Assembly (NCBI GenBank): GCA_965112735.1
Contig: OZ218957.1
Span: forward strand, 3,607,293 to 3,671,292
Reading direction: 5' to 3'
DNA: 64,000 nucleotides
Source: Phaeosaccion multiseriatum
Taxonomy: Eukaryota; Protista; Ochrophyta, other classes
Below the pieces are notes generated by a model, which saw only the letters and a program-made list of their open reading frames with translations, was not told where the DNA came from and made no database searches. Both the position numbers and the translations under genes were made by a program. This document shows, piece after piece, positions 28,939 through 50,498 of this stretch (positions are counted from its first letter, which is position 1; each line of letters begins with the position of its first letter).

Positions 28939-29396
28939 CAAGTTATAAAAAAGCTCACTCAGCTCACTGACTCCACTGTGGATGGCAGCTGATGCGCCTG
29001 ATCGCAGAGAGGGCCCCTCTTTTTCCGCGCCACAGGGGGGGGAGGGTAGGGTGACGCGACACGGCATGGCATGCCTCGTGAGCGAAGCCTATGCTTGACG
29101 CATGGTCTATCTATGGTTGAAGCATGGTCTTAGACTCTCTGGGCGCTGCTCGGCATGAGCCTGCGACACAACACAGAGCCTGCACAAGCTGTAAGATACG
29201 GACTTGAATGTGTTTGGAAGCAATCTGTTTATTACACTTGGTTTTAGACATGGACCATGGCCCTTCCTTCCTTCTAACGCTCTAATACATGATATCGCTC
29301 TATCTCTTACTTAAATGGGAAAGAAGGGCCTGGGCCGGGCCCGTGTTGTCAAAATCACGCGCTGGTTTGTGTTTGCATGTATCATGCACCTACGGC

Positions 29397-29993
29397 TTAC
29401 TGGAGCTCGAGCACAACGTCGATGGCGTGGATGAGGCCGTTGCTGGCTGGCACATCGACGGGGTAGGTCTGTCCCTTGGAGGCGCCCGCAGACACGATGC
29501 CCACCATGGCCTCGTCGAGGAAGGTCTTGCGGAAGCGGCGGCCGTAGGTGAGGGTGGAGCTCAGGGTCTGCACATCGCCAGTGATGGCCGAGAGGGGCAG
29601 GTGGCCCTGCACCACGTGGTTCTTGATGAGGGTCGCGTCCAGGGGGCCCTTGTACACAGACATGGCCTTGTCGGTGGGCGCAAAGATGGTCCAGGGCCCG
29701 CCCTGCCTGAGCTCGTTGGCCACCCCCGAGCTCTGCAGGGCCTGCGCGAAGAGGCCGAAGTTGTCGTAGCCCCTGATGTCGGCCTCCTCATGCCCCAGCG
29801 GCACACCTGCTGCGCCCCAGTACACCACGGGGCCCTGCAGTCCCGCAATAGTGTCCACCACATCGCCCTGCATCCTCAGGCTGGAGGCAGATGCGCGGCT
29901 CACCGGCACGGCGGGGCGCATGGGCGCGAGGAAGCCCGTGAAGGCCGTGGTGCTGACCACGAGGGAAGCGAGTGCGATGATAGTGGCGCGCAT
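29397..29993 (-). CDS. Fasciclin (FAS1) domain protein, 198 aa, bipartite plastid-type presequence; copy A
   Basis: Presequence MRATIIALASLVVSTTA-FTGF. FAS1 motifs WTIFAPTDKAM (H1), IKNHVV and ASNGLIHAIDVVL (H2). Intronless. Confidence 0.9.
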   Translation of the reverse strand: MRATIIALASLVVSTTAFTGFLAPMRPAVPVSRASASSLRMQGDVVDTIAGLQGPVVYWGAAGVPLGHEEADIRGYDNFGLFAQALQSSGVANELRQGGPWTIFAPTDKAMSVYKGPLDATLIKNHVVQGHLPLSAITGDVQTLSSTLTYGRRFRKTFLDEAMVGIVSAGASKGQTYPVDVPASNGLIHAIDVVLELQ

Positions 29994-30991
29994 GATTGCA
30001 AAGAGGGGGGGGGTTGTAATTGCTAGCGAAAAATGGATATGGAAGGAAGTTGTAGGAGCGGGGGGGGGGAATTGTGAGGAATTGAAAGATTTCACAACGA
30101 CCGCAACAGAAACTGGAACTGAAAACTTCATTGATTACGTAAGGTTCAAAGTTCGGGTGCTAAAAACTAGTTTTTGAGCAGAGCGAGTTTACGAGTCGAT
30201 AGTATCGTATAAAACGTATTTTCGGGAAACGGGGAGGACTGGCAGTTACAGTGTTACAGTCAAGAAATGGTTGAAGGCAAGGGTACGCCGCGCCGACTGA
30301 CGCAAGGGGCCTAGCGGCCCGCTCGACACGTAGGACGCCCACCGCACCGGGGTATAGCAAGAATCTAGCATTCACTACTGTAAAAGAGGAGGCGACGCGA
30401 GTACGGCGTCGCAAGAGTTGTAGCAAGTGCCGAAGAGCTCAGCGCGGTGAGAAGGACAGCGAAGGGGCGGAGCAGCCCAGCAGTCCACCGCGCAAAGGAG
30501 ACGGCAGCGACAGCAAAAGTTTCCCCACCCGCCCGGCCCGGGGGGACGAGTGGGATTATCGGGAATCCAACGGGGTGGATGGGAGTAGGGGCGAGGCAGA
30601 CGCGTCTGCCCGCCCTGCTTTGGCACCCCCTGGAAATCGCATTTACCCCCCCTTACACAATATAAACAATTATAAGTATTAGCAGTTTGAATGAGGGAGA
30701 GAGGTTGAGGGGAAGGCATGGGCAGTACTAGGTGTCAGGACGTAGTGGACTGAAAATCTTTTTCTTTTTTCAACACAACAGCACTTGTTAAGCAGCGCCA
30801 GGCATGCAATTGAGTTGTACAAAGTGTTTACATGATTAGTTGGCGCCGGGCCGGGCAAGCTCAGGGAGATGAATACACCAAAGCCTCTGGGCCTCTTGGC
30901 TCCTCTTGGCTATGGTAGGGCCCCTCCTTTAACTCTTCGGATGCGAGGGGGGGCTTGTGGAGACATTGGGTCGGTACCGTCCACCCACGCG

Positions 30992-32494: not shown

Positions 32495-32841
32495 GCCTGT
32501 ACCGAGTCAACCTTCTTTATCTGCAGGGCGGCATAGGGCAGCGCAGGGGAACAGGGAAGGGGGGTGGAGGTGTGGTGATCAAGGGGGAGACCGAGAGGAT
32601 GGTAAGATCGAGAGCACAAGGGAGCACACAGCCGAGAGCGGCCGAGGAAAGGAGGGGTTCAGTGCTTACCTGCAGCGAGTGCTGCCGCGCCCCCCCGTCT
32701 GTGGCCGATTCGAAAGCTTGGGTTGGATTGCATAAAAGTAAAAAGCCCTCTTCTCGAAAATTGTTCTCCCTCATCTTCCCTCATACAACTTTGTTCCGGA
32801 TTGAACTTCCCCCCCCCCCTCTCGAGACCCTCTTTGCAATC

Positions 32842-33438
32842 ATGCGCGCCACTATCATCGCACTCGCTTCCCTCGTGGTCAGCACCACGGCCTTCACGGG
32901 CTTCCTCGCGCCCATGCGCCCCGCCGTGCCGGTGAGCCGCGCATCTGCCTCCAGCCTGAGGATGCAGGGCGATGTGGTGGACACTATTGCGGGACTGCAG
33001 GGCCCCGTGGTGTACTGGGGCGCAGCAGGTGTGCCGCTGGGGCACGAGGAGTCTGACATCAGGGGCTACGACAACTTCGGCCTCTTCGCACAGGCCTTGC
33101 AGAGCTCGGGGGTGGCCAACGAGCTCAGACAGGGTGGGCCCTGGACCATCTTTGCGCCCACCGACAAGGCCATGTCTGTGTACAAGGGCCCCCTGGACGC
33201 GACCCTCATCAAGAACCACGTGGTGCAGGGCCACCTGCCCCTCTCGGCCATCACCGGCGATGTGCAGACCCTGAGCTCCACCCTCACCTACGGCCGCCGC
33301 TTCCGCAAGACCTTCCTCGACGAGGCCATGGTGGGCATCGTGTCTGCGGGCGCCTCCAAGGGACAGACCTACCCCGTCGATGTGCCGGCCAGCAACGGCC
33401 TCATCCACGCCATCGACGTTGTGCTCGAGCTCCAGTAA
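32842..33438 (+). CDS. Fasciclin (FAS1) domain protein, 198 aa; copy B (inverted paralogue of 29397-29993)
   Basis: Protein identical to copy A except EEAD/EESD, plus a few synonymous changes. Confidence 0.9.
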   Translation: MRATIIALASLVVSTTAFTGFLAPMRPAVPVSRASASSLRMQGDVVDTIAGLQGPVVYWGAAGVPLGHEESDIRGYDNFGLFAQALQSSGVANELRQGGPWTIFAPTDKAMSVYKGPLDATLIKNHVVQGHLPLSAITGDVQTLSSTLTYGRRFRKTFLDEAMVGIVSAGASKGQTYPVDVPASNGLIHAIDVVLELQ

Positions 33439-33738
33439 GCCGTAGGTGCAAACACAAACCAGCGCGTGCTTTTCACAGCACTGGGACTCGTTTAGCGAAG
33501 AGAGGGAGCGTTGTTTGAAAGAACGCTCGAAAATCATCAGCAACAGACGATATATATGAAGGTCCTTCCTTTATTACACCCATAATACTAATCAATCATA
33601 CTAGACCGGTTCGCGACAACGTCGCACGTTTACATGCAAAGTCGTTCCTTCCTCTACTGTAGGACGCGTATGTGAGGCTTCAGCTCAACGGGAAGAGGGC
33701 CCGTGGTCCAACGCAATCCACTCTCAGGCTTCCCCCTT

Positions 33739-33787
33739 GACACTGAGCACTGAACCCTGAAACTCAAACTGGTGGAGGGCAGCGTCA

Positions 33788-33820
<33 letters not shown>

Positions 33821-33924
33821 GCAGCCGCATTCGGACCCTCGGCGCCGTCACGTAAGATCCACGTAAGTTGGTGGGGATGGCCGTGGACGACGACGCATAG
33901 GGTGGGGGCGGGGGGGGGGAGCTG

Positions 33925-34004
<80 letters not shown>

Positions 34005-35217
34005 CGCTACACCACCTGCCCCTCCCTCCCTCCCTCCAAAACCAACTCACACACAGGTCGCACGTCCCGACACGCATCCTGAGCTTTCGGGCTACCTCGG
34101 AGGTGCTGCTCAGCCTAGGCCCCGACTTGGGCTCCCGCGGACGCTTCACCACCATGAGCCAGCAGCTCTTCGAGATGAGTGCCCTGGAGGCCTCCCAGAG
34201 AGAGGCGGAGGCCTCCGGGAGGGAGCTGCAGCGCCTGCCGACACAGCTCGAGCGCGCGGTACGTGAAGCGAGAGACCGGCAAGGGATGGGCGGGAGACGG
34301 AAGAGGGAAGACAGGGGGTGAGGCAATGGGCCTGAAGGAAGCAGTAAGTCAGCAGGATGAAGCAGTACGTCAGCAAGTGAACTCTTGTGGCTTGCTTGAC
34401 ATGTGCTGACCGCTGATCTGTGACCTCGATCGCATCGTTTGTACGGCCCTTCACAGATGGCACAGATGAATGATGTGTTTTTTGGGGAAGCTAAGGAGAG
34501 GGCGGTGGCGCTCGAGTGTAATCCCCAGGCCGCGCAGGAGGAGAAAGAGCGCCTCGACGACGCCCCCCACGAGCAGAAGCAGCAGTCCTGCAAGGACGAG
34601 GTAAGAGTAAGGGGCAGTAGGGTACGGCTGGATACCTTTATCGCTCTCCATTCTCTCTGCGTCTGTGCAAGAGTGTGAGGAGCCAAGGTTCAGGGGAGAG
34701 AGAGAGGAAGAGAGGCAGAGGTTTCAGGGGTCAGGGCGAAGCTGCGCTTCTCTGGAGGGGAGGCCACAACCGTCTGGTAGAGGAGAGGCTTGGGACACAG
34801 GCCCTCGCTCGAAGCTCATTAGCAACTCCTCCCCTCCTCCTTCCTCCCTCCCTCCCTCCCTCCAACGCAGGAGAGCGGTGCTCGGGAAGAGGGCACGAGG
34901 GCGCCGGTGGACCTCCGCATGGCAACCGGAGGCACGAGCAGCGCTGTTGTGAGGTAGGTACGGCTCGTGGATGCGGCCGCATGTGGGTGTGCGCGTGGGT
35001 GCGCGTGTAGGTGCGCCTTGGTGGTTCTCTCCTCCTCCTCCTCCTCCTCCTCCTCCTCCTCCTCCTCCTCCTCCTCCTCCTCCTCCTCCTCCTCCTCCTC
35101 CTCCTCCTCCTCCTCCTCCTCCTCCTCCTCCTCCTCCTCCTCCTCCTCCTCCTCCTCCTCCTCCTCCTCCTCCTCCTCCTCCTCCTCCTCCTCCTCCTCC
35201 TCCTCCTCCTCCTCCTC
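33739..35217 (+). repeat. Segmental duplication copy 1 (gene-fragment exons), ending in a (CCT)n tract
   Basis: Colinear with 41320-43198, e.g. the shared CAGGTCGCACGTCCCGACACGC... and ...GGTGCGCCTTGGTGGTTCT(CCT)n. Confidence 0.9.
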
Positions 35218-35262
35218 GTAGTAGTACTCCTCCTCCTGCTGCTGCTACTACTACTACTAGGA

Positions 35263-35333
<71 letters not shown>

Positions 35334-35482
35334 CTACTCCTCCTCCTCCTCCTCCTCCTCCTCCTCCTCCTCTCCTGCTCCTCCTCCTCCTCCTCCTCCT
35401 CCTCCTCCTCCCCACCACTGCCACCACCACCTCCTCCTCCTCCTGCTCACACGAACAGTTTGCGTTGTTTTGTGGCCCGCAG

Positions 35483-36546
35483 CTCATCGGCAATCGCTGG
35501 GCAGAGATCGCTCGGCTGCTCAAGGGCCGGCCCGAGAACATGGTCAAGAACCGCTTCAACAGCACCTCCAGGTGAGAGAGTGAGTTCGGCAGGCAGCACT
35601 ACTCAGAGTGTATATTGTCGGTGGAGTGGATGATGGCGGGTGCGACTCGTCTCCTCCTTGTCTCATACACTCTGCCCCCTCCCCCCACCCACCCCACCCC
35701 CCGGTGTGCCGACACACACACACACACACATGCACCTTCAGACGCAAGTGGGACCGGTCCTCGGAAGCCGTGTTGGACAAGGTGCGGCGCTTGCTCGCAG
35801 AGGCGGACAGGGACCACACAAAAGCACCGGATAGGGAGATTATTGTAACGGCGGCGACGGCGGCGGGGGGGGGGGGGAGAGGACGGCGGAGTCCTGACAA
35901 GGACAGGCGGCGGGACAGTTCGTGTGAGGAGCTTGCTGGCATGGGCTTTGTTGGGGCCCCAATGGCCGATGTGGAGGGGGGGGACCCAAGCAGGCGGTCT
36001 CCGGCGGGGCCCACTAGCCGAGTTGGTGATACAGCAGCAGCAGCAGCAGCAGAAGGTGCGAGGCCTGGGGCATTGGCAGAGGTAGGAGGGTCGGTTACAG
36101 GAGTAAGCCGGATACAAAGCAGTAGGCCGCCTCCGCTCTCGGTGGATCGCTCAGGGCGAGGTGGGCCGATGGCTGAGTCGGCGGCAGGAGGGGCGGGGCG
36201 CTCCTCGTCCTCGTCCACGTCAGACTCCCTGGCTGCGCTGCTGCTGCTGAAGACACCGACCTCGGAGGCCGGAGAAGGAGGGTGAGGGGGAGAGGGAGGA
36301 GGAGGAGGAGTAAGACGAGGAGGAGGAGCAAGAGAAGAAGAAGAAGGAGGAGGAGGAGGAGGGGGGCGCAGGCAGTCATGGCTGCGCGGGAGACCATGCC
36401 CCGTGTGTCCCCCTCTGAGAAAATTCCCCTGGACATGATGCGCTACTTCCACTACCTCAACGACGACGCACAGTACAACATCATGCGGCAGCTCGTCAAC
36501 AAGATGGCGGACACGGCCATTGATGAAGGGGGCAAGGAGGAGGCGG

Positions 36547-36577
<31 letters not shown>

Positions 36578-37634
36578 CAAGTTAGTGATACAGCCGGCCG
36601 CAGAGGGCATGGCGGTGGAGGTGGAGGGTGGCAGTGCCCGGGAGCGGGGGGGGCAGCAGCAGCAGCAGCAGGAAGAAGAGGAGGAGGAGCAGTCGGTGGT
36701 GCAGCAGGTGATACAGTCGTTGTCAGCGCGCAGTCCCCCTCGTGGGGCCGTGCCGCCTCGCCCCACCTCCATATCCACGCTGGGCGGGGCTCGCCAGGAG
36801 CGCTATAGCACCAGGCAGTCACCAGTAAGGGGCTCGGAAGGGGCCTTGTCCTCCCAGTGGGGCATCGCCAGCAGCAGCGGGGCGGGGGGGGGAGCGGGCT
36901 CGCGCAGGGAGAGACACCGGAACGGGTCCCTGTCACCCCCGGGGATTATGTCAGCGCAGGAGTTGGCGGCAAGGGCGGAGGCCTACCTCACCGGCGCGAT
37001 GCCCACGGTGCCTCCAGACGAACACTCCAGCCCGGGGGGAGGAGGAGGAGGAGGAGGAGGAGGAGGAGGAGGAGGAGGGGGGGCGCGGAGCAGGAGTGGC
37101 AGTACCAACCCGAGCGGCGGGGACGAGGCCTTTAGTGCTCCTCTGCCCCCCCCAGCAATGGCCAAGGATAGAGGAGGAGACGTGCAGGCACAGCAGCAGC
37201 CCGGCGGGGTGCCCGGGTACATGAGCAGCGCAGGCACGCGCTCGAGGAGCGGCACGAACATGTCTCTTGACTCGCTCGGCTCCCAACCCTACCTCAACAC
37301 GCCCATCCGCCTCAACACGGAGGACGAGCTGCACCTGAACCTCAACGGGCCCATTCGCATGAACACGGATGAGGAGATTGACCTCATGTTCAACGGGACC
37401 GCCAGGCGGTGGCCGACCATATGCAGGCCCTGCTCGCGGGAGCGGGCAGCAGTAGCATCAGCAGCAGAGGAACAGACGGCAGCGGTGGCGGCAGCCGCAG
37501 CAAGGCGACAGGGGCAGGGGCAGGGGCAGGCAGTGGATGACGCGAGGAGAGGCGGTGAGGCGCTGTATGGCGCTCGAGTGGGACATGGAGCGACATGCAT
37601 GGAGTGTGTGGGGATTGACTGGCTGGTCAATTGA
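35483..37634 (+). pseudogene. Truncated MYB transcription factor gene (C-terminal half of an R3 repeat plus low-complexity tail)
   Basis: Exon 35483-35571 reads LIGNRWAEIARLLKGRPENMVKNRFNSTSR, a canonical MYB R3 helix 2/3. No upstream MYB exons are present, and the frame breaks at ~36283. Confidence 0.7.
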
Positions 37635-37819
37635 GTGGCTTGTCCGTGGCCCTCGCTGAGTCGAGGGGGGGCGGGCAGGGGCGGCAGCTGGCCGTTCGGC
37701 AGCAGGGCAGGAGCGTCACTCCCCTCAGGGCCCCTTGAGGGCCTGGCGGGGGCTCCGGTGGTACCCACCCAGTCGTAGTCTCGTAGAGCGGGGAGTCGGG
37801 GATAGTCGGGGACTGACAC

Positions 37820-38180
37820 TCAGCCCCATGCACGCCTAGCGGTTTTGCTCTAGGCCGCTCACTTTTCACCAGTCCTAGGCGGCCTCTAGCCCGCCTCTAG
37901 GCAGCCTCCCAGTGACCGTGGGCGCGTGCGTTGTGCCGCCCAGCCAGTGGGTAGCAGCACACCTGTAGGCCTGCACACCTCGTAGGGCCAGCGAGGCGGA
38001 AAGAGACAACACAAACCAATTCTACTCCTCCCTTCTAACTGACTACTCTTTGCACTCTGGGCACTCCCACCGTCCGCCTACAGTAGTTGGCTTCTGCCCT
38101 AGGCGGCGGCATATAAATAGGCCGACGCTAGGCCGGGCAATTTTCCCAATTAGGCCTATAGGAGGCGTGCATGGGGCTGA
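37820..38180. mobile_element. 361-bp MITE-like non-autonomous DNA transposon (hAT-like ends)
   Basis: Perfect 18-bp TIRs TCAGCCCCATGCACGCCT (37820-37837) and AGGCGTGCATGGGGCTGA (38163-38180). Flanking direct repeat TGACAC (37814-37819, 38181-38186). Repeated subterminal CTAGG/TAGGC motifs; no ORF. Confidence 0.75.
38112..38119 (+). promoter_or_regulatory. TATA-box-like TATAAATA inside the MITE
   Basis: Consensus TATAWAWA in a GC-rich context, ~240 bp upstream of hairpin 1. Confidence 0.35.
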
Positions 38181-38357
38181 TGACACACACACACACACAC
38201 ACCCGCTCCAAATCTAACATTCGAAATAAAGGCTGGGTTGATGACACACCAGCTCCAACTTCAACCTCACGCTTGGGAATTTAACACAACACAACACAAC
38301 AACACAACACAACACACCTGCGCGCTTGCTTAGTGAAGGGGGGAAAGCCGCCATACG

Positions 38358-38572
38358 TCGTCCTTGCGATGCCGTACATGCGGCGGTGAGTTCATTGAGG
38401 GGCCTCCTTACATTCTTCAGCACAGGCCCGATGAGCAGGGGTGGATGCGTGGCCCATAGCGCCAGGGCAGGGCGTATAACCGCTCACCGCTCTGCTCATC
38501 GGGCCTGTGCTGAAGAATGTAAGGAGGCCCCTCAATGAACTCACCGCCGCATGTACGGCATCGCATGGACGA
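38358..38572. repeat. Hairpin 1: inverted repeat, 81-bp arms, 53-nt loop (pre-miRNA-like size)
   Basis: 38358-38438 is the reverse complement of 38492-38572 with one mismatch. Confidence 0.92.
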
Positions 38573-39304
38573 ACCAGACACCATTCGTGATCTGCTGCTG
38601 TTGCCACCGTCGTGCTCATGTGTATGAGGGCGCCCTTTCTTTGGAGGACCCCTATGCGTTGAGCGAGGAGGACGCAACAAACATTTTGCGTCATGGTGAG
38701 GTCTAGCAGCAGCAAGGTAAGGAAAGGGTATAGAAGGCGGAGCCACAAACGGCTCTCACAAACGGCTGGAGAGGAAGAAGGGTCTGTAAGCCCTCGGCCA
38801 ATGACAGATGTGTGTAGAAGAGGAGAAGAAGCAGTCGGAAGGTCAACGCACTTTAAATCGGTCCACACTGCCCCTCTCCCAACACGCTGTCCGCTGCTCT
38901 GCCTCCCCCCCTCCCTGCGCAGCCACCAACCGCACACAAGCCAGACGCTCGCCCTCCAGCCAGCCATGGACAGCGCTGCGAGCGGCCCAGCCTCAGCTGG
39001 AGAGGCGCAGCCGGCACAACGCGAGGTGCGCAAGCCCCTTCTGCCGAGGGAGGGTAACGCCTCGTCACAGGTGCAGAAGCAGCAGCAGCCCATACCGACC
39101 AAGCCAACTACTTCCAGCGGTGCGTGAGCTCGAGCCCTTTGACTGTTCCACTACCGCCCCATTGCCTCACTCCCTCGTGTGCAATGCTTGTCGCGTGCCC
39201 CCACTCAAGATGACCCACTGCCCTCCCTTCTCCCCCTGCCTTCTCTGTCGCACAATACTGTTTTGTTCCCCCGTGAAGTGGACCCGGAGGCCAAGTTGCG
39301 GAGG

Positions 39305-40058
39305 CACCCACACTCACCCATGCTGTCGTGCGTGGTGCTCGAGGACCTGGATAGCGACACTCCGCGTCGCGTCTGACCACTCCGACTCGATCCGCTTCAC
39401 CAACGTGGTTGTGACGGCCGCCACGAGTCTCGAGAGCTCCTCCTCCAAGCCCTTGGCCATGATGCGGTCTTGGGCGTCGAAGAAGAAGCGAAGCAGCCTC
39501 CATACGTCGTTCCACACAGCCACGTTTCGGACTGTATTCCTTCTGAGAAAAATAGCACAGAGAGAGAGGCAAATGGCTGGGGACCGTCCTCTTTCCGCAC
39601 CTTGGGCACGACCAAATACTGTGGTGAGTTTCTCCGCAAGAAGCGCTGCCACAACGGTATGTGCTCGTACTTGCATCATCTTGCATCATGATGCAAGTAC
39701 GAGCACATACCGTTGTGGCAGCGCTTCTTTCGGAGGAAGTCACGACATTGGTCGTGCCCAAGGTGCGGAAAGAGGACGGTCCCCAGCCATTTGCCTCTCT
39801 CTCTGTGCTATTTTTCTCAGAAGGAATACAGTCCGAAACGTGGCTGTGTGGAACGACGCATGGAGGCTACTTCGCTCCTTCTTTGACGCCCAAGACCGCA
39901 TCAAGGCCAAGGGCTTGGAGGAGGAGCTCTCGAGACTCGTGGCGGCCGTCACAATCACGCTGGTGAAGCGCATCGAGTCCGAGTGGTCAGAGGCGACGCG
40001 GAGTGTCGCTTTACAGCTCCTCGAGCACCACGCACGGCAGCATGGGTGAGTGTGGGTG
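39305..40058. repeat. Hairpin 2: ~375-bp-arm palindrome of a gene fragment, essentially without a spacer
   Basis: Arms 39305-39679 and 39688-40058. Mirror ORFs RNTVRNVAVWND.WRLLR on both strands; scattered substitutions between arms. Confidence 0.92.
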
Positions 40059-41147
40059 GACGGATGGTTGTAGTGTATGGGTGGGTGGAGGGGTGGGTGG
40101 AGGGGTGGGTGGATGGCAGTGGATGGATGGATAGATGGTTGGTTGCGTGGGTGTGTGTCTGGATGGATGGCAGCAGATGGATGGCAGTCAGTGGACGGTA
40201 GTGGGTGGACGGATGATGGCAGTGGATGGATGGGTGGGTAGAGATGGATGGGTGGGTGGAGGGGTGCGTGGATGGCAGTTAATGGACTGATAGATAAGTG
40301 CGTGGGAAGGTGTGGGTGGGGTGGGGTGGGTGTGTGTCGGTGCGTGGATGGATGGCAGTGAATGTGTGGTAATGAATGACAGTCGATGGATGGGTTGTGG
40401 GTGGGGCTTTTGCGTCCTCTTCATGTTCGCTCTCGTCCCCGTGTCTTCAATTGCAGTGAGTGGTGCGACGGCAGCGCCATGGTGAAGTGGAGCCTGGGCG
40501 AAGACGGCACCACCCTCCTCTTTGCAAGAGGCACACGCTCCGGCTCGCTCCCGTCGTACGAGGAGAAGTCGTGGAGGAACACGCAGCGCTTGTTCGTGGA
40601 GACCGTCGGCGAAGAGACTCCTTCAGTGCCCGTGTGTCTCAGATATGCGCTGACATCCGAGCCCTCCATAGTCACGGTCGAGCCCCAGAAGGCCTACCAG
40701 GAGCTCTTGTCCTGGTCTGAAGTCGACGACTGCTACGTGGCCCGCTACAAACGGCCAAGCAAGGTGGGTGGGGGGTCTTATCGGTAGGTGTGTGCGTGTG
40801 TGGGTTAACGGAGGGGTGGGGGGGTTTGGGTGCACACCTACCGATAAGGGGCGAGGTCGTCGGCAGCACCACGCACATGACCCATCCCATTCGCTTTCTG
40901 CCTTCTGTCGGCTCACGGACCAGGTTCATTGCCTCTGCCCCCCCCCCTCTCTTCCATCCACTGCCTTCCCCCTCCCCAACTCCCCCACCACGTGCCCCCT
41001 CTCGCCCACCCGCATCCACTGATGCCTGACCCTCCGCTTCCCTCCCTCAAGGATGCTTCCAAGCCCCCTGCCTTGCAGTGCTTCGCCTTCAAGTGCCCCG
41101 AGAAGGTGGTGATGAGCTGCAAGGCCATGGCAGGGCTCCTGCACCAG
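39688..41147 (+). pseudogene. Fragment of an unidentified spliced gene
   Basis: Exon-like blocks ~39688-39762, 39821-40045, 40456-40762 and 41052-41147 with GT-AG borders. No recognisable continuation. Confidence 0.5.
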
Positions 41148-41319
41148 GTGAGTTTCAGTTTCAGTTTATTATTTCATGTCTGCAAGAGATGGAGTGCTTG
41201 TGTGGTTTGGTAGTGGGCAGTGGCTTGTCGTTTGATGTAACTCATGGGTAGGTATTCGTATGTGTATTGATGCCCCGAATTGTGTTGATTGATTGCCTCT
41301 CTGTACTCCACTGAAATTG

Positions 41320-43198
41320 GACACTGAACACTAAACCCTGACAATCAAACTGGTGCAGGTGAGCGCGTGCGGCAGCATTCGCGCGCTCAGCAGCAGCAGC
41401 GGCAGCAGCATTCACATGCTCGGTGCCATCAGGTAAGTTGGTGGGGATGGCAGTGGACGGCGGCGAGTAGGGTGGGAGCGGGGGGGGGGGCGCTACATGT
41501 GTGTGTGGCTGTGTGCGTGTGTGTGAGTGTGTGTTTTGTTTATGTATGTATGTGTGTGTGTGAGTGAGGGAGAGCGCTACACCACCTGCCCCTCCCTCCC
41601 TCCCTCCAAAACCAACTCACAAACAGGTCGCACGTCCCGACACGCATCCTGAGCTTTCGTGCCACCTCGGAGGTGCTGCTCAGCCTGGGCCCCGACTTGG
41701 GCTCCCGCGGACGCTTCACCACCATGAGCCAGCAGCTCTTCGAGATGAGTGCCCTGGAGGCCTCCCAGAGAGAGGCGGAGGCCTCCGGGAGGGAGCTGCA
41801 GCGCCTGCCGACACAGCTCGAGCGCGCGGTACGTGAAGCGAGAGACCGGCAAGGGATGGGCGGGAGACGGAAGAGGGAAGATAGGGGGTGAGCGATAAAG
41901 GTATCAAGCAGTACCCTACTGCCCCTTACTCTTACCTCGTCCTTGCAGGACCGCTGCATCTGCTCGTGGGGGGCGTCGTCGAGGCGCTGTTTCTTCTCCT
42001 GCGCGGCCTGGGGATTACACTCGAGCGCCACCACCCTCCTTCAGCTTCCCCATATCATTCATCTGTGCCATCTGTGAAGGGCCCTTCACAGATGGCACAG
42101 ATGAATGATGTGGAAGCTTAAGGAGAGGTGGTGGCGCTGAGTGTGGGGAAGAACCAGCGCCTCGACGACGCCCCCCACGAGCAGATGCAGAAGTCTGCAA
42201 GGACGAGGTAAGAGTAAGGGGCAGTTGGGTACGGCTGGATACCTTTATCGCTCTCCATTCTCTCTGTGTCTGTGCCAGAGTGTGAGGAGCGAAGGTTCAG
42301 GGGAGAGAGAGAGGAAGAGAGGCAGAGGTTTCAGGGGTCCGCGCGAAGCTGCGCTGCTCTGGAGGGGAGGCCACAACCGTCTGGTGGAGGAGAGGCTTGG
42401 GACACAGGCCCTCGCTCGAAGCTCATAAGCAACTCCTCCCCTCCTCCTTCCTCCCTCCCTCCCTCCCTCCAACGCAGGAGAGCGGTGCTCGGGAAGAGGG
42501 CACGAGGGCGCCGGTGGACGTCCGCATGGCAACCGGAGGCACGAGCAGCGCTGTTGTGAGGTAGGTACGGCTCGTGGGTGCGGCCGCATGTGGGTGTGCG
42601 CGTGGGTGCGCGTGTAGGTGCGCCTTGGTGGTTCTCTCCTCCTCCTCCTCCTCCTCCTCCTCCTCCTCCTCCTCCTCCTCCTCCTCCTCCTCCTCCTCCT
42701 CCTCCTCCTCCTCCTCCTCCTCCTCCTCCTCCTCCTCCTCCTCCTCCTCCTCCTCCTCCTCCTCCTCCTCCTCCTCCTCCTCCTCCTCCTCCTCCTCCTC
42801 CTCCTCCTCCTCCTCCTCCTCCTCCTCCTCCTCCTCCTCCTCCTCCTCCTCCTCCTCCTCCTCCTCCTCCTCCTCCTCCTCCTCCTCCTCCTCCTCCTCC
42901 TCCTCCTCCTCCTCCTCCTCCTCCTCCTCCTCCTCCTCCTCCTCCTCCTCCTCCTCCTCCTCCTCCTCCTCCTCCTCCTCCTCCTCCTCCTCCTCCTCCT
43001 CCTCCTCCTCCTCCTCCTCCTCCTCCTCCTCCTCCTCCTCCTCCTCCTCCTCCTCCTCCTCCTCCTCCTCCTCCTCCTCCTCCTCCTCCTCCTCCTCCTC
43101 CTCCTCCTCCTCCTCCTCCTCCTCCTCCTCCTCCTCCTCCTCCTCCTCCTCCTCCTCCTCCTCCTCCTCCTCCTCCTCCTCCTCCTCCTCCTCCTCCT
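41320..43198 (+). repeat. Segmental duplication copy 2, containing an internal fold-back and ending in a ~565-bp (CCT)n tract
   Basis: Colinear with 33739-35217 except for 41890-42081. Confidence 0.9.
41890..42253. repeat. Hairpin 3: spacer-less palindrome centred on GGG|CCC (42081/42082), arms ~190/170 bp
   Basis: Core ATCATTCATCTGTGCCATCTGTGAAGGG|CCCTTCACAGATGGCACAGATGAATGAT. Outer ends GAGCGATAAAGGTATC / GATACCTTTATCGCTC. Confidence 0.92.
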
Positions 43199-43338
43199 TA
43201 CCCCCTTTCTTTTTGTGATATCGCGATGGACTTCCTAAAGAGCTGTCGCCCTTTGCTTCGTCTGGCTCATCGCACCGCTTGCTTGTCCCCTCGTGCCTCT
43301 GTCTCTCCTTCACTTCACTTCATCGCTGCTCTCAAAGC

Positions 43339-44438
43339 CCCGGCCGAGGTCGAGACACACGTCCCGAGGAAGGCTCCTCCCCGTCCAGGGCCGTCGCCAG
43401 CCTTCCATGGGACGCTCCCTCTCTCCAAACCCCCGCTCACCACCACGTGCCTTGGCTCCCCGCCCAAAATGAATCAAGCGCCGCGTCCTCCTCCTGAGCC
43501 GGCAGGCAAGGCAGAGAAGGGAAAAGGAAACAGAAGTCTCAGACGCGCTGCGGGAGGAGAAGCTCAAGTGCGTGGAGGCGAAGAACAAAATGTTGGAGCA
43601 GGAGGTGCAGCAGCTCAAGATGTTCGAGCAGGAGGTGCAGCAGCTCAGAGTGAGTTGATGTCCCTCCTCACTCATCGTTGATGATATGCATCGCACCCCC
43701 CTTAATGTATTCTCTTGACCCCCCCTCTCGCTCACTCACTCACCCACTCACTCCAATCCCTCCGCCGCACCATTCGAGGCGCTCGTTCTGCCTTTTCCCT
43801 CCAAGCCCATCCCAAGCCTGGCTGCCTCATTTCCCCTTTACCCTAAGTGTCGGCCCATCCTCACTCCCATGCACCACCTTCTTCCCTTCCTCACTCCCTC
43901 CCTTGCGGGGCTGACATGCGCCCCCTCTCTGCTGCTGCACCTGCAGGAAGCCGATGAGCGCTCTCGACTGGACCTTCAATTGGAGCTTGAGCGCAGCCGA
44001 GAGGAAGCAGAGGCGGCAAAGCGGAGGGTGGTCGAGCTGGAGCATTGGAGGGAGATGGAGGAGCTGGAGAGCACCTTAGAGGAGGTGGTGAGCAGCGCTG
44101 GAGGCAGTGACGGAGACGACGACGACCACGACGACGAGGAGGAGCAGGAGGAGGAGAACCACCATCAGCAGCAGCAGCAGCAGGAGGAGGAGAAGAAGGA
44201 GGAGGAAGAGGAGGAGGAGGAGGAAGTGGAAAAGAAGGAGGAGCAAGAGAAGAAGAAAGAGAAGGAGGAGGAGGAGGAGGAGGAGGAGGAGGAGGAGGAG
44301 GTGGTGGTGGGACATGACGTTGGGGCCTCTGCTTCTTCCCAAGGGGGTCGAAGCTTACACCACCGCGCCCGCCTCACTGAGCCGGAGTTCGTGGAAGCTG
44401 CAGGGGGCGCTGCACAGGTTGGTCACAGACCAGGGTAA
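43339..44438 (+). pseudogene. Fragment of a coiled-coil/acidic protein gene
   Basis: ALREEKLKCVEAKNKMLEQEVQQL|GT...AG|EADERSRLDLQLELERSREEAEAAKRRVVELE. The upstream frame is interrupted by stops. Confidence 0.45.
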
Positions 44439-44521
44439 TCCAGTCTCACTCCTTCATTTCTTCATTCGTTCGTTCATCCGTTCCTTGCTTGTTTGGGCAT
44501 ATGATGTCCTGTTCTGACCCA

Positions 44522-44868
44522 CCCCTCCCTCCCTCCCTCCCTCCCTCCCTCCCTCCCTCCCTCCCTCCCTCCCTCCCTCCCTCCCTCCCTCCCTCTCTCC
44601 CTCCCTCCCTCCCTCCCTCCCTCCCTCCCTCCCTCCCTCCCTCCCTCCCTCCCTCCCTCCCTCCCTCCCTCCCTCCCTCCCTCCCTCCCTCCCTCCCTCC
44701 CTCCCTCCCTCCCTCCCTCCCTCCCTCCCTCCCTCCCTCCCTCCCTCCCTCCCTCCCTCCCTCCCTCCCTCCCTCCCTCCCTCCCTCCCTCCCTCCCTCC
44801 CTCCCTCCCTCCCTCCCTCCCTCCCTCTCTCCCTCCCTCCCTCCCTCCCTCCCTCCCTCCCTCCCTCC
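44522..44868. repeat. (CCCT)n microsatellite, ~345 bp
   Basis: Direct observation. Confidence 0.97.
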
Positions 44869-45750
44869 AGCCACCTTGCGCCGCTGTCCTAATCGTGTAG
44901 CTCTCTCGCCCCCTCCTCCTGTCAGTCCACCTTATCTAAACAAGTCAGCCTCTTAGAGGAGGCCATGAGAGACCGCTAGGCTCTTCACAAAGTCCCTGAC
45001 CTCCTCATCGGTCTGCGCTCCCTTTGTGATTTGAACCTCCTCGGCCGATACCCGGTACATCCGGTACTTGAATCCCCCTGTGGGCCACTTAGCTTCCGAT
45101 CGGGGGTTGGCCGTGAGTGTCGTGCCGATAAGGTCCTCGGAGTGTCGGAAATAGATCCGGCTGCGCGGCCCATGTACGGGAAGCCAAATCATGTCCTTCT
45201 CCTTCGGGAAACCCTCCGTACCAACCACCCCCCCAAAGAAGCGATGGGTATCGTCGATCTGCAGCTTGCCGTGGATCCCCGCCCACAGGCCACCAGGGAC
45301 ACTCGTAGCGAAGATGCTGTATCCTGGACAAACTTTGGGAAGTGGGAGCTGCAGATCGACGATACCCATCGCTTCTTTGGGGGGGTGGTTGGTACGGAGG
45401 GTTTCCCGAAGGAGAAGGACATGATTTGGCTTCCCGTACATGGGCCGCGCAGCCGGATCTATTTCCGATACTCCAAGGACCTTATCGGCACGACACTCAC
45501 GGCCAACCCCCGATCGGAAGCTAAGTGGCCCACAGGGGGATTCAAGTACCGGATGTACCGGGTATCGGCCGAGGAGGTTCAAATCACAAAGGGAGCGCAG
45601 ACCGATGAGGAGGTCAGGGACTTTGTGAAGAGCCTAGCGGTCTCTCATGGCCTCCTCTAAGAGGCTGACTTGTTTAGATAAGGTGGACTGACAGGAGGAG
45701 GGGGCGAGAGAGCTGCACGATTTACGACAGCGGCGCAAGGTGGCTGGAGG
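44864..45750. repeat. Hairpin 4: ~403-bp near-perfect arms, 80-nt loop; inverted duplication of a terminal exon and 3' flank
   Basis: 44864-45266 versus 45347-45750. Mirror ORFs end ...DFVKSLAVSHGLL* on both strands. Confidence 0.95.
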
Positions 45751-46413
45751 CGGCTCGAGGGGAGTATGGGGCAGGAGGGGGGGAGGAGGCAGTGGTAGTG
45801 TGGGACGACAGCGGAAGGAGAGGAACGGACACAGAAAGAGGCGGAGGGGGAGATGGGCCTCACAGAAGTTCATCTCCTTATGCATTGTCCTTACGCAGTG
45901 TTGTGTTGTGATGGTTGATAGTAGGGACTTTTCTAGGGACTGGATTTTGCTTTGTATATTGGAGGGCGTGACGTGACATAGATAGATGGGTATAGGGGTC
46001 TCTGGTCAAGAGTGGATGGACGGTGGCAGTGCGCTAGCTATCCTGACTCTACACTTACACTTGAACGGTGGGTGGGGGGTGGGTAGCGAAGGGGCATGGG
46101 AAACCACTCTCTTCCCTCCGGTTCATGATATGATACTGAATAATGCAAGTCTTAAGAGCAGAATGAAAGTATAAACGTTCTTGTGCAAGTCTCGTGTATA
46201 CGTCTGACACCGTCTTCCAGCCATCTCATACCAGGCCCCGCTCCATCAAGTAGGAGGTAGGGTGAAAGGGGGAGAGAAGCCCCTGCTGTCGTCGTCGTGC
46301 CCCCAAACACCTTCCTATTCTGCACTGCTCATCGCAACACTCGTGCTCCCTCCCGTCCACAAAGAGCACCCTAGCAGAGCTCTATACCTCCCTCCCTCCC
46401 TCCCTCCCTGCGT

Positions 46414-49400
46414 GGCCCATCTGGCCTGATATCGACACGGGAGGGTTGAACTGTGCTGTCTCTGGGCCGATGGGGATAAAATGGTCCCGCCATGGTCGCA
46501 ATGAGTGTGCTGAGCGTCTCTGGTGTGCCCGGTACGGTGTTCTGTGTGGTTGGACAGGCCCATCTGTGGGCCCCGGGGGGTCATCTGGCGCCTGATTTCG
46601 ACACGGGAGGGTTGAACAATGGCTTCCATGGGCCGGTGGGGTTGAAATGGTCCCACCATGGTCGCAATGAGTCTGTGCGGGGTCTATGGCGCGCTCGGCG
46701 GGGTTGAACATGGGCCTCTGTGGGGTTGAACAGGCCCATCTGTGGCCCCCGGTGGGCAATCTGGGCCTGATCTCGGCACGGGAGGGTTGAACAATCGCTT
46801 CCATAGGCCGGTGGGGTTGAAATGGTCCCACCATGGTCGCAATGAGTCTGCGCGGCGTCTATGGGGTGCTCGGCGGGGTTGAACATGGGCCTCTGTGGGG
46901 TTGAACAGGCCCATCTGTGGGCTACCCCGGTGGGCAATCTGGGCCTGATTTCGGTACGGGAGGGTTGAACAATCGCTTCCATGGGCCGGTGGGGTCGAAA
47001 TGGTCCCACCATGGTCGCAATGAGTCTGCTTTTCATCTATGGTGTGCTCGGCGGGGTTGAACATGGGCCTCTGTGGGGTTGAACAGGCCCATCTGTGGCC
47101 CCCGGTGGGCAATCTGGGCCTGATTTCGGCACGGGAGGGTTGAACAATGCCTTCTGTGGGCCGGAGGGGTTGAAACGTTCCCAGCATGATTGGAATGGGT
47201 CTGCGATGCGTCTATGGTGCGCTCGGCGGGGTTGAACATGGGCCTCTGTGGGGTTGAACAGGCCCATCTGTGGCCCCCGGTGGGCAATCTGGGCCTGATT
47301 TCGGCACGGGAGGGTTGAACAATGCCTTCTGTGGGCCGGAGGGGTTGAAACGTTCCCACCATGATTGGAATGGGGCTGCGATGCGTCTATGGTGCGCTCG
47401 GCGGGGTTGAACATGGGCCTCTGTGGGGTTGAACAGGCCCATCTGCTGCCCCCCGTGGGCAATCTGGGCCTGATTTCGACACGGGAGGGTTAAACAATCG
47501 CTTCCATGGACCGGTGGGGTTGAAGTGGTCCACCATGGTCGAAATGAGTCTGCGATGCGTCTATGGCGTGCTCGGCGGGGTTGAACATGGGCCTCTGTGG
47601 GGTTGAACAGGCCCATCTGTGGACGCCGGTGGGCAATCTGGGCCTGATTTCGGCACGGGAGGGTTGAACAATCGCTTCCATGGGCCGGTGGGGTTGAAAT
47701 GGTCCCACCATGGTCGCAATGGGTCTGCGCGTCGTCTACGGTGTGCTCGGCGGGGTTGAACATGGGCCTCTGTGGGGTTGAACAGGCCCATCTGTGGCCC
47801 CCGGTGGGCAATCTGGGCCTGATTTCGACACGGCAGGGTTGAACAATGCCTTGTGTGGGCCGGTGGGGTTAAAATGGTCCCACTATGGTCGCAATGAGTC
47901 TGCGCGGCGTCTATGGTGCGCTCGGCGGGGTTGAACATGGGCCTCTGTGGGGTTGAACAGGCCCATCTGTGGAGCCGCCCCCGGTGGGCAATCTGGGCCT
48001 GATTTCGGCACGGCAGGGTTGAACAATGCCTTGTGTGGGCCGGTGGGGTTGAAATGGTCCCACCATGGTCGCAATGAGTCAGCGCAGCGTCTATGGTGCG
48101 CTCGGCGGGGTTGAACATGGGCCTCTGTGGGGTTGAACAGGCCCATCTGGGGAGCCGCGCCCGGTGGGCAATCTGGGCCTGATTTCGGCACGGGAGGGTT
48201 GAACAATGCCTTCCATGGGCCGGTGGGGTTGAAGTGGTCCCACCATGGTCGCCATGAGTCTGCGATACGTCTATGGTGCGCTCGGCGGGGTTGAACATGG
48301 GCCTCTGTGGGGTTGAACAGGCCCATCTGTGGCCCCCGGTGGGCAATCTGGGCCTGGTTTCGGCACGGGAGGGTTGAACAATGCCTTGTGTGGGCCGGTG
48401 GGGTTGAAGTGGTCCCACCATGGTCGCAATGAGTCTGCGATACGTCTATGGTGTGATCGGCGGGGTTGAACATGGGCCTCTGTGGGGTTGAACAGGCCCA
48501 TCTGTGGCCACCGGTGGGCAATCTGGGCCTGATTTCGGCACGGGAGGGTTGAACAATGCCTTCCATGGGCCGGTGGGGTTGAAGTGGTCCCACCATGGTC
48601 GCAATGAGTCTGCGATACGTCTATGGTGCGCTCGGCGGGGTTGAACATGGGCCTCTGTGGGGTTGAACAGGCCCATCTGTGGCCCCCGGTGGGCAATCTG
48701 GGCCTGGTTTCGGCACGGGAGGGTTGAACAATGCCTTGTGTGGGCCGGTGGGGTTGAAGCGGTCCCACCATGGTCGCAATGAGTCTGCGATACGTCTATG
48801 GTGTGCTCGGCGGGGTTGAACATGGGCCTCTGTGGGGTTGAACAGGCCCATCTGTGGCCACCGGTGGGCAATCTGGGCCTGATTTCGGCACGGGAGGGTT
48901 GAACAATCGCTTCCATGGCCGGTGGGGTTGAAGTGGTCCCACCATGGTCGCAATGAGTCTGCGATACGTCTATGGTGTGCTCGGCGGCGTTGAACATGGG
49001 CCTCTGTGGGGTTGAACAGGCCCATCTGTGGCCCCCGGTGGGCAATCTGGGCCTGATTTCGGCACGGCAGGGTTGAACAATGCCTTCCATGGGCCGATGG
49101 GGTTGAAGCGGTCCCACCATGGTCGCAATGAGTCTGCGCGGCGTCTATGGTGCGCTCGGCGGGGTTGAACATGGGCCTCTGTGGGGTTGAACAGGCCCAT
49201 CTGTGGACCCCGGTGGGCAACCTGGGCCTGATTTCGGCACGGGAGGGTTGAACAATCGCTTCCATGGGCCGGTGGGGTTGAAGCGGTCCCACCATGGTCG
49301 CAATGAGTCTACGCGGGGTCTATGGCGCGCTCTGCGGGGTTGAACATGGGCCTCTGTGGGGTTGAACAGGCCCATCTGTGGACCCCGGTGGGCAATCTGG

Positions 49401-50497
49401 GCCTGATTTCGGCACGGGAGGGTTGAACAATCGCTTCCATGGGCCGGTGGGGTTGAAGCGGTCCCACCATGGTCGCAATGAGTCTGCGCGGCGTCTATGG
49501 TGCGCTCGGCGGGGTTGAACATGGGCCTCTGTGGGGTTGAACAGGCCCATCTGTGGACCCCGGTGGGCAACCTGGGCCTGATTTCGGCACGGGAGGGTTG
49601 AACAATCGCTTCCATGGGCCGGTGGGGTTGAAGCGGTCCCACCATGGTCGCAATGAGTCTACGCGGGGTCTATGGCGCGCTCTGCGGGGTTGAACATGGG
49701 CCTCTGTGGGGTTGAACAGGCCCATCTGTGGACCCCGGTGGGCAATCTGGGCCTGATTTCGGCACGGGAGGGTTGAACAATCGCTTCCATGGGCCGATGG
49801 GGTTGAAAAGGTCCCACCATGGTCGCAATGAGTCTGCGCGGCGTCTATGGCGTGCTCGGCGGGGTTGAACATGGGCCTCTGTGGGGTTGAACAGGCCCAT
49901 CTGCGGCCCCCCGTGGGCAATCTGGGCCTGATTTCGACACGGAAGGGTTGAACAATCGCTTCCATGGACCGGTGGGGTTGAAGTGGTCCCACCATGGTCG
50001 CAACGAGTCTACGAGGGGTCTATGGTGCGCTCGGCGGGGTTGAACATGGGCCTCTGTGGGGTTGAACAGGCCCATCTGTGGAGCCGCCCCCGGTGGGCAA
50101 TCTGGGCCTGATTTCGGCACGGGAGGGTTGAACAATGCCTTCCATGGGCCGGTGGGGTTGAAGTGGTCCCACCACGGTCGCAATGAGTCTGCGATACGTC
50201 TATGGTGCGCTCGGCGGGGTTGAACATCGGCCTCTGTGGGGTTGAACAGGCCCATCTGCGGCCCCCCGTGGGCAATCTGGGCCTGATTTCGACACGGGAG
50301 GGTTGAACAACCGCTTCTATGGGCCGGTGGGGATGAATGGGACCCACCACGGCCGCAATGAGTCTGCGCGGCGTCTATGGTGTGCTCGGCGGGGTTGAAC
50401 ATGGGCCTCTGTGGGGTTGAACAGGCCCATCTGTGGGCTCCCCCGGTGGGCAATCTGGGCCTGATTTCGACACGGAAGGGTTGAACAACCGCTTCTA
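46414..50497. repeat. Subtelomeric satellite, ~175-bp unit, ~23 copies
   Basis: Period of 175 bp (some units 174-180). Four GGGTTGAA submotifs per unit. Degenerate at the proximal edge. Confidence 0.95.
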
Positions 50498-50498
50498 T

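Follow-up and report, generated by a model that had tools for sequence, protein, structure and literature searches.

The window analysed here is a stretch of 64,000 nucleotides from Phaeosaccion multiseriatum (contig OZ218957.1), and four long inverted repeats lie within 7.4 kb of it. They raise the question of whether this part of the chromosome end is a source of hairpin RNAs, as the initial annotation had proposed, or whether the fold-backs are scars of DNA repair, which it had named as the alternative. A repeat search and gapped self-BLAST of the window (E-values from 1e-63 to 0) confirmed that the four inverted repeats, HP1 to HP4, are real and lie at the positions claimed for them. The hairpins, to which no strand is assigned, are the following:

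38358-38572, HP1: arms 38358-38438 and 38492-38572, 81 nt with 1 mismatch, loop of 53 nt
39305-40058, HP2: arms 39305-39679 and 39688-40058, about 375 nt with about 94% identity, spacer of 8 nt
41890-42256, HP3: arms 41890-42081 and 42082-42256, about 190 and about 175 nt, zero loop
44864-45750, HP4: arms 44864-45266 and 45347-45750, 403-404 nt with 5 differences, loop of 80 nt

HP2 can alternatively be laid out with a zero loop centred on the palindrome CTTGCATCA|TGATGCAAG. The arms of HP3 are 84% identical with many indels, and their centre reads GAAGGG|CCCTTC. Folded as RNA, HP1 reached -198.6 kcal/mol (z = -22.6), and long, stable inverted-repeat stems of this kind are a feature of hpRNA, endo-siRNA and proto-miRNA loci. 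The content of HP2 to HP4 (exon plus intron or exon plus flank) was confirmed, and the view that they are DNA-level inverted duplications of gene pieces was supported. In HP4 the two pieces stand head to head, each arm consisting of the last ~105 codons of an orphan open reading frame and ~90 nt of 3' flank. This frame has a coding-like GC content by codon position (0.60/0.42/0.72), and DNA and protein searches of the 67 Mb genome recovered no copy of it beyond the two arms themselves.

Three of the hairpins are located inside or just upstream of the degenerate copy of a multi-exon orphan gene, which we call gene X; HP1 lies ~400 nt upstream of its first exon, and HP4 follows ~430 nt downstream of the copy. 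The surrounding features are:

38967-44438, forward strand, gene X copy, with exons E1-E10 picked by eye
39820-40046, forward strand, exon E2 of gene X in the right arm of HP2, with an antisense copy at 39317-39543 in the left arm
33739-35448, forward strand, older, incomplete tandem-like copy of gene X that corresponds to 41320-43052 and keeps the pre-HP3 state
40059-40400, forward strand, G-rich minisatellite of the GGATGG type, starting at the exact end of the HP2 arms
44523-44868, forward strand, (CCCT)86 microsatellite, ending exactly at the start of the left arm of HP4
46412-64000, forward strand, chromosome-end context of satellites followed by telomere repeat
46412-50499, forward strand, 175-bp satellite
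50499-61081, forward strand, 42-bp satellite, interrupted at 51928-53689
61081 to the end of the window (64000), forward strand, (TTAGGG)n

Towards the chromosome end, no gene-like DNA follows the gene X copy before the satellites of the subtelomere and the TTAGGG telomere are reached. The GGATGG-type minisatellite is also found in the paralogue on C3 and thus predates HP2. A mini LTR element was observed 6 kb from the hairpins. Exons E1-E6 and E8 aligned without gaps to the C3 paralogue, and E2 retains an open frame, an acceptor (ttttctcag) and a donor (GTGAGT) and is also gap-free against the C7 copy. E7 carries stops in all three frames here, whereas it is open in C3 and at 34457-34600, and three exons that are intact in C3 are missing at HP2. 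The loss of these three exons, together with the disruption of an E7 that remains open in the two other copies, marks this copy of gene X as dead. No Pfam family matched any gene X exon.

The unfolded state of HP1 to HP3 is kept in the internal C3 paralogue and in the second partial copy in the window. The segment C3:4707590-4715471 is collinear with positions 36806-44196 of the window and contains none of the hairpins. Alignment to the unfolded paralogues placed the inverted copy of HP1, HP2 and HP3 directly beside its own template, and original DNA had been replaced (~80, ~880 and 123 nt, respectively) rather than merely inserted into. For HP1, the unfolded state is present in both C3 and C7. 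Here, the ~80 nt of ancestral DNA gave way to an 8-nt filler and an inverted copy of the first arm together with the next 38 nt; the filler corresponds to a motif that the ancestral sequence carries 24 nt downstream, and the distal junction shows CGA microhomology. The original sequence of HP2 is found in its right arm, with the inverted copy on the left, and the ~880 nt that are gone held the three missing exons. The centre of HP2 falls on the above palindrome, which has a TCATGA core; the microhomology at the outer junction is only 0-1 nt. The same hairpin recurs with identical junctions at C7:3932596-3933170.

HP3 has the same layout, with the inverted copy on the left and the original (intron end, exon E7 and the start of the next intron) on the right. 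Its ancestral state can be read at 34322-34646 of the window and in C3, and comparison shows that 123 nt of intron were exchanged for the ~190 nt that follow, in reverse complement. The outer (left) junction carries GAG microhomology, the centre sits on an ancestral GGCC, and the hairpin is decaying through deletions near this centre. In HP1 to HP3 junction microhomology amounts to 0-4 nt, and two centres (HP2, HP3) coincide with short natural palindromes. The two arms of HP4 are the sole copies in the genome. The outer end of its left arm adjoins (CCCT)86, with GGAGG common to both. As HP4 has no ancestral copy, its original arm and its junctions, including a GGAGG microhomology with (CCCT)n, are putative.

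The initial annotation had considered that this zone may capture gene pieces. A general capture of genes from elsewhere was not supported, since each arm copies adjoining sequence. The sole exception is a 120-nt fragment in HP2:

39560-39679, forward strand, fragment of a CCCH zinc-finger exon (C-x8-C-x4-C-x3-H), in sense orientation within the left HP2 arm
39688-39807, antisense, mirror copy of this fragment in the right arm of HP2

The fragment is absent from the C3 paralogue, and its only other relative detected by tblastn and blastn lies at C5:2859927-2860027 (83% DNA identity). The Pfam model zf-CCCH_10 matched the C5 open reading frame with E = 0.025, which is below the cut-off. These inner 120 nt of each HP2 arm must reflect an earlier or more complex step.

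We consider it likely that the four hairpins are scars of recurrent fold-back repair or template switching in a dead, already redundant copy of gene X at the subtelomere's inner edge, and the non-functional repair scars that the initial annotation had offered as its alternative fit the junction anatomy best. Template-adjacent inverted copies, loss of sequence (HP1-3) and microhomology or a palindrome at the junctions are the marks of such events. As to the enzymology, we infer that a break or a stalled fork would remove a stretch of the original DNA, and that copying of the sequence flanking the gap on one side, in reverse complement, would fill it. By the most likely route, a resected 3' end would fold back at a natural palindrome of 4-6 nt (GGCC in HP3, TCATGA in HP2) or further in, leaving a loop (HP1, HP4). 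The folded end would then be extended by 80-400 nt, and the new end would be joined across the break via 0-5 nt of microhomology. A replicative strand-to-strand template switch would yield an equal product, and FoSTeS/MMBIR is likewise a form of replicative template switching. The loop of HP1 is oriented opposite to the simplest model, so that a loop flip or three template switches would be needed. The flanking G/C-biased repeats may have stopped synthesis or caused the breaks. In addition, an existing palindrome may render its neighbourhood break-prone, which would explain the crowding of the hairpins.

This crowding exceeds the background of our controls. The initial annotation had noticed no such hairpins in the first 29 kb, and we found that HP1 to HP4 are the only inverted repeats with a spacer of up to 300 nt in the 64-kb window. 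The only other inverted pair in the window consists of two intact genes 2.8 kb apart (29.3/32.8 kb). According to our own calculation, four points would fall within 7.4 kb of 61 kb with a chance of ~0.007. The control sample was small (150 kb); inverted repeats with arms of at least 80 nt were not found in samples from 12 other chromosomes that totalled 120 kb, and one inverted repeat was present in 30 kb of C3, as compared with four in 7.4 kb here. At the rate of this small sample the Poisson probability of the crowding is ~2e-7, and at the upper 95% bound of that rate it is ~1e-4 (own calculation).

Such crowding might also be expected if one catastrophic event (serial template switching, chromoanasynthesis-like) had made all four hairpins. 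Several inverted segments are a known outcome of events of this kind, and HP1, with its multiple junctions and its templated filler, would fit. However, HP2 is common to the ends of C8 (this chromosome) and C7, whereas HP1 is absent from C7 and C3; the events therefore took place at different times, at least two in number. Arm identities moreover span 84% to 99%, and long collinear, unrearranged stretches separate the hairpins. A single event is thus very improbable, and we count at least two, probably four separate fold-backs. The repeated events over time postulated in the initial annotation were borne out by presence and absence in the paralogous copies; arm divergence, on which that claim had been based, is unfit for dating since gene conversion distorts it. 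That HP2 has identical junctions in both of its diverged loci (the second on C7) also bears on an assembly artefact from chimeric fold-back reads, which the near-perfect arms of HP1 and HP4 and the adjoining satellites might suggest. No arm pair is identical, however, the hairpins lie in the interior of a telomere-to-telomere contig, and HP3 is only 84% identical with many indels. Such an artefact is unlikely, and we attach a very slight probability to it. Still less credence is given to inserted fold-back transposons, MITEs or by-products of retroelement hairpins. The mini LTR element lies 6 kb away, but the arms of HP1 to HP3 copy adjacent host sequence that is unfolded in the paralogues, and no further copies exist in the 67 Mb outside the paralogous segments. 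Target-site duplications were sought in the hairpin flanks and not found, and the ends are not of the TG...CA type.

It is accepted that both young MIRNA genes of plants and the hpRNAs of Drosophila originate when a target gene is duplicated in inverted orientation. Plant proto-MIRNA and Drosophila hpRNA loci have long exon-derived stems, an intact paralogue elsewhere and complementarity beyond a single small RNA, and they are defined by transcription, dicing and target regulation. The hairpins described here resemble them in their exon-derived stems and their intact paralogue. If the locus produced functional hairpin RNAs or endogenous siRNAs, transcription of the dead copy would be followed by dicing of its stems and silencing of the C3 paralogue (perhaps also of the C5 CCCH gene). 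Judging from the gene content, a small-RNA role appears feasible: the genome encodes a Piwi-domain (Argonaute) protein on C13, RNase III on C1, C2 and C4 and an RdRP on C1 (all above Pfam cut-offs), and the exact runs shared with the C3 gene, the only other copy of the family, measure 113 nt (HP2) and 62 nt (HP3). The stems are long and very stable, and HP2 and HP3 would lie in one transcription unit in the orientation of the old gene. Transcription of the region is possible, in which case the stems would be expected to undergo Dicer-type processing. A paralogue elsewhere, of the kind that the initial annotation had proposed to search for, exists for HP2 and HP3, but HP4 has no other copy and therefore no possible target in trans except itself. 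HP1 matches only non-exon upstream sequence, and the longest exact match to the C5 CCCH gene is only 17 nt.

Unlike in proto-MIRNA and hpRNA loci, the arms show no sign of constraint. Among the four HP2 arms, a small sample, there were no double (compensatory) changes versus up to 7 single-arm changes, and in the same small sample identity between C7 and C8 is no higher for the arms (93-98%) than for their flanks (94-98%). HP3 is decaying through its central deletions, and Rfam returned no match. We therefore regard a functional small-RNA locus as improbable. A self-feeding scenario, in which HP2 arose before the C7/C8 split and created a fragile site, repeated fold-back repair followed and the diced stems gave small RNAs acting on the C3 paralogue, is doubtful as well, if somewhat less so. 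It would include a lineage unusually tolerant of palindromes of hundreds of base pairs and, across that lineage, a natural path from the death of a gene to the birth of a hairpin RNA.

The preferred reading, fold-back repair or template switching, has precedents in other organisms. In yeast, breaks at which fold-back priming is followed by end joining have been documented (PMC11724301). The snap-back insertions described there (NHEJ or alt-EJ) share with our hairpins the template-adjacent inverted copy, the loss at the break site, microhomology at the fold-back point and capture junction and, in some cases, templated fillers or pieces of distant loci. However, the yeast insertions are mostly 5-34 bp long, whereas those reported here measure 80-400 nt, have become fixed in a wild genome and occur repeatedly within 7 kb. 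ODIRA likewise generates inverted duplications at short inverted repeats or microhomologies, and its template switching fits both the natural palindromes on which HP2 and HP3 are centred and the multiple junctions seen in HP1, but it amplifies large origin-containing segments, whereas we observed small local replacements with net deletion (PMC10766183). Large human fold-back inverted duplications (PMC3907307) have the same fold-back geometry with a short spacer and the same association with chromosome ends and pre-existing palindromes. In Aspergillus flavus, palindrome-associated inverted rearrangements cluster in subtelomeres, and its inverted triplications agree with our hairpins in geometry and in their association with chromosome ends and palindromes (10.1101/2025.01.14.632981). 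The human (PMC3907307) and A. flavus (10.1101/2025.01.14.632981) events are, however, of kb to Mb size or transient and of low abundance, in contrast to the series of small, fixed hairpins described here for a single dead gene.

For three of the four events, copies preserved in the earlier state allow a base-by-base reading, which is rare outside laboratory break assays. The locus is thus a natural record of how small fold-back duplications form, survive the duplication of chromosome ends, exchange with paralogues and decay. If palindromes seed further breaks, this alga would be useful for studies of palindrome tolerance and fold-back repair, and if the stems are diced, the locus would represent the first step in the birth of a hairpin-RNA gene in a stramenopile-like alga.

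The right end of the 3.67-Mb contig C8 (OZ218957.1), which the window covers (C8:3607293-3671292), belongs to an assembly of 67 Mb in 22 contigs with a GC content of about 60%. The chromosome end itself carries three repeat blocks:

61081-64000, (TTAGGG)n, the outermost block
50499-61081, 42-bp satellite, broken at 51928-53689
46412-50499, 175-bp satellite, between the 42-bp satellite and gene-bearing DNA

The initial annotation had described four inverted repeats in the gene-bearing DNA. A repeat search and gapped self-BLAST recovered all of them (HP1-HP4) at the same coordinates and with the same arm and loop sizes, and the arm contents confirmed that HP2-HP4 consist of exon plus intron or flank DNA:

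38358-38438 and 38492-38572, HP1, 81-nt arms, 53-nt loop, about 400 nt upstream of exon 1 of the host gene (gene X)
39305-39679 and 39688-40058, HP2; the right arm runs from a 120-nt antisense CCCH zinc-finger exon fragment through an intron end and exon E2 to 12 nt of the following intron, and the left arm mirrors it
41890-42081 and 42082-42256, HP3, no loop; the right arm spans exon E7 with the end of the intron before it and the beginning of the one after
44864-45266 and 45347-45750, HP4, 80-nt loop; each arm covers the final ~105 codons of an orphan ORF together with its 3' flank, and the arms lie head to head

These four are the sole inverted repeats with a spacer of up to 300 nt in the 64-kb window (one extra row in the search output was inner HP2). 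Inverted repeats with arms of at least 80 nt were absent from twelve arbitrary 10-kb samples of twelve other chromosomes, and a 30-kb control from contig C3 contained one. This lone small palindrome (positions 3197-3393 of L025, C3:4720001-4730000; arms of ~100 nt, 83% identical) was the only fold-back with arms of at least 80 nt across the 150 kb of control sequence. The hairpin density in our region is about 80 times that of the control, which corresponds to a Poisson P of ~2e-7 at the control rate. With none in 120 kb and one in 30 kb of control sequence, the local crowding of hairpins is real.

Gapped self-BLAST of the window yielded only one additional inverted pair, two fasciclin-like genes (29343-30007 and 32828-33481) that are 97% identical, both intact and separated by a 2.8-kb spacer. 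The genome has no further copy of them, and this larger inverted duplication lies at the inner edge of the hairpin zone:

29397..30131, minus strand, fasciclin-like ORF
32572..33438, plus strand, fasciclin-like ORF, with a 500-aa ORF between the two

Gene X is an orphan multi-exon gene (38967-44438, plus strand). HP1-HP3 lie in it or just upstream of it, and HP4 follows about 430 nt downstream. When its exons, examined singly, and the HP4 ORF were compared with Pfam, nothing scored above the cut-offs, and an ESM Atlas search for their identity gave no usable match. A HMMER search of 1.84 billion representatives returned a single match, a 1394-aa bacterial cadherin-repeat protein that aligned weakly, over 12 stretches with 28% identity; we regarded this match as repeat-inflated and discarded it as not meaningful. 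The GC content of the HP4 ORF by codon position (0.60/0.42/0.72) is coding-like.

Related copies of the host region provided the hairpin-free and hairpin-bearing states for comparison. Only the first of them is a full copy of gene X, and the genome has no other besides the one in the window:

C3:4707590-4715471, C3 copy, 1.15 Mb from the contig end, collinear with window 36806-44196, hairpin-free
33739-35448 of the window, older partial copy, equivalent to 41320-43052
C7:3928373-3933170, C7 copy, ~10 kb from the C7 contig end, collinear with window 35047-39863

In HP1, the ancestral order A(81)-B1(38)-~41 nt-C was replaced by A-GGGTGGAT-rc(B1)-rc(A)-C, where rc denotes the reverse complement. 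The 8-nt filler corresponds to an ancestral motif located 24 nt downstream, and CGA is common to both sides at the last junction. At HP2, exon 2a breaks off after ~30 nt, and the right arm in reverse complement comes next. Some 880 nt with exons 2a-2c are missing, and all three exons are open in C3. The centre of HP2 is the palindrome CTTGCATCA|TGATGCAAG. The CCCH fragment inside HP2 has a sole relative, a gene on contig C5 (83% DNA identity), which combines a weak RRM-like match with a C-x8-C-x4-C-x3-H zinc finger, and long stretches of polyglutamine come after the finger:

1035-2421 of L008 (C5:2858427-2861527), minus strand, zinc-finger gene

At HP3, the next ~190 nt, in reverse complement, took the place of 123 nt of intron; the outer junction has GAG in common, and an ancestral GGCC forms the centre. 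The outer boundary of HP4 falls exactly at (CCCT)86 (44523-44868), with GGAGG common to both, and that of HP2 exactly at a G-rich GGATGG-type minisatellite (40059-40400) older than HP2 itself. Two of the four hairpins thus stop exactly at long strand-biased G/C repeats, and both repeats could fold into G-quadruplexes or i-motifs and obstruct polymerases or forks. Elsewhere in the window, (CCT)188 at 42636-43198 is 100% perfect over 563 nt, and the equivalent repeat in the older copy (35029-35448) is 92% regular; the perfect tract suggests a very recent expansion or homogenisation.

Exons E1-E6 and E8 of gene X are gap-free relative to C3. E7 has stops in every frame in this copy, but its counterparts in C3 and at 34457-34600 are open. 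Judged by its exons, including those missing at HP2, the window copy of gene X is dead.

The C7 copy, which differs from C8 by ~2-7% substitutions, has HP2 with an identical outer junction and centre, and HP2 is therefore older than the exchange that took place between the ends of C7 and C8. HP1 is absent from both C7 and C3 and must be younger, and neither C3 nor the first C8 copy has HP3. The presence and absence of hairpins in these copies bear out the proposal of repeated events over time and prove that two or more events took place, separated in time; four separate events are likely. The initial annotation had read this timing from arm divergence, an approach that fails on a block of ~10 sites in HP2, in which the left arm matches C3 and the right arm matches the left arm of C7. 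This pattern points to gene conversion among paralogues, and since conversion appears to have reshuffled the HP2 arms, we dropped arm divergence as a clock. An excess of C7-C8 conservation in HP2, suspected from gapped BLAST identities, vanished when substitutions were counted alone. The right (original) arm of HP3 has lost 9, 1, 1, 17 and 1 nt within ~70 nt of the centre (42082-42160), and the copied arm still has the ancestral bases at these sites. These losses resemble the deletions close to the centre by which palindromes become stable.

A silencing locus, as initially proposed, is feasible: the dead locus could be a source of hairpin RNA acting on the C3 gene. The genome has Piwi, RNase III and RdRP genes, and source paralogues do exist for HP2 and HP3, which match the C3 gene exactly over 113 and 62 nt, respectively. 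However, DNA and protein searches found no further copy of HP4 in the genome, which leaves it without a trans target. Moreover, compensatory changes are absent from the four HP2 arms, the hairpin arms are no more conserved than their flanks, HP3 is in decay, and an Rfam search returned no family. Exact-protein look-ups in public assemblies and a metagenome scan for the HP2 centre, aimed at transcripts or other strains in collections that may lack records of this genome, gave no match. Taken together, the sequence evidence leans against a selected silencing role, and a hairpin-RNA function is feasible but unsupported.

For fold-back repair, initially offered as the alternative, the combination of deletion, adjacent inverted copy and short microhomology fits two known routes. 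In one (PMC11724301), a resected break end would prime on itself by fold-back and then undergo end joining; in the other (PMC10766183), replicative strand switching would lead to the same structures. Strand arithmetic under the break model yields exactly X-rc(R)-R-Y, the arrangement of HP2 and HP3. The templated extras reported for such repair are of the same kind as the zinc-finger fragment of HP2 and the filler of HP1. The genome has family-A polymerase genes, candidates at most for Pol theta, at three loci. A common polarity of the hairpins was considered and rejected: the original lies telomere-side in HP2, HP3 and probably HP4, HP1 is opposite or ambiguous, and 3:1 is not significant.

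The flanking repeats may have halted synthesis or caused breaks, and HP2 may have made its neighbourhood fragile. The C7 copy stops inside the right arm of HP2 at C7:3933170, where unrelated DNA beginning with TGTTAG follows; this end is compatible with fragility but is no proof of it. Further out, C7 carries inverted 42-bp satellite blocks and only 85 bp of TTAGGG, which looks like an interstitial telomere tract; 6.4 kb more follow, and the contig ends in (GGCCA)n:

C7:3933170-3936527 (~3170-6530 of L029, C7:3930001-3940000), junction, satellite blocks and TTAGGG tract
C7:3933938-3934252 and 3934413-3934727, inverted satellite blocks, 315-nt arms, 100% identical
C7:3936443-3936527, TTAGGG tract

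The best reading of the hairpins at this chromosome end is that they are scars left in a dead gene copy by recurrent fold-back repair.
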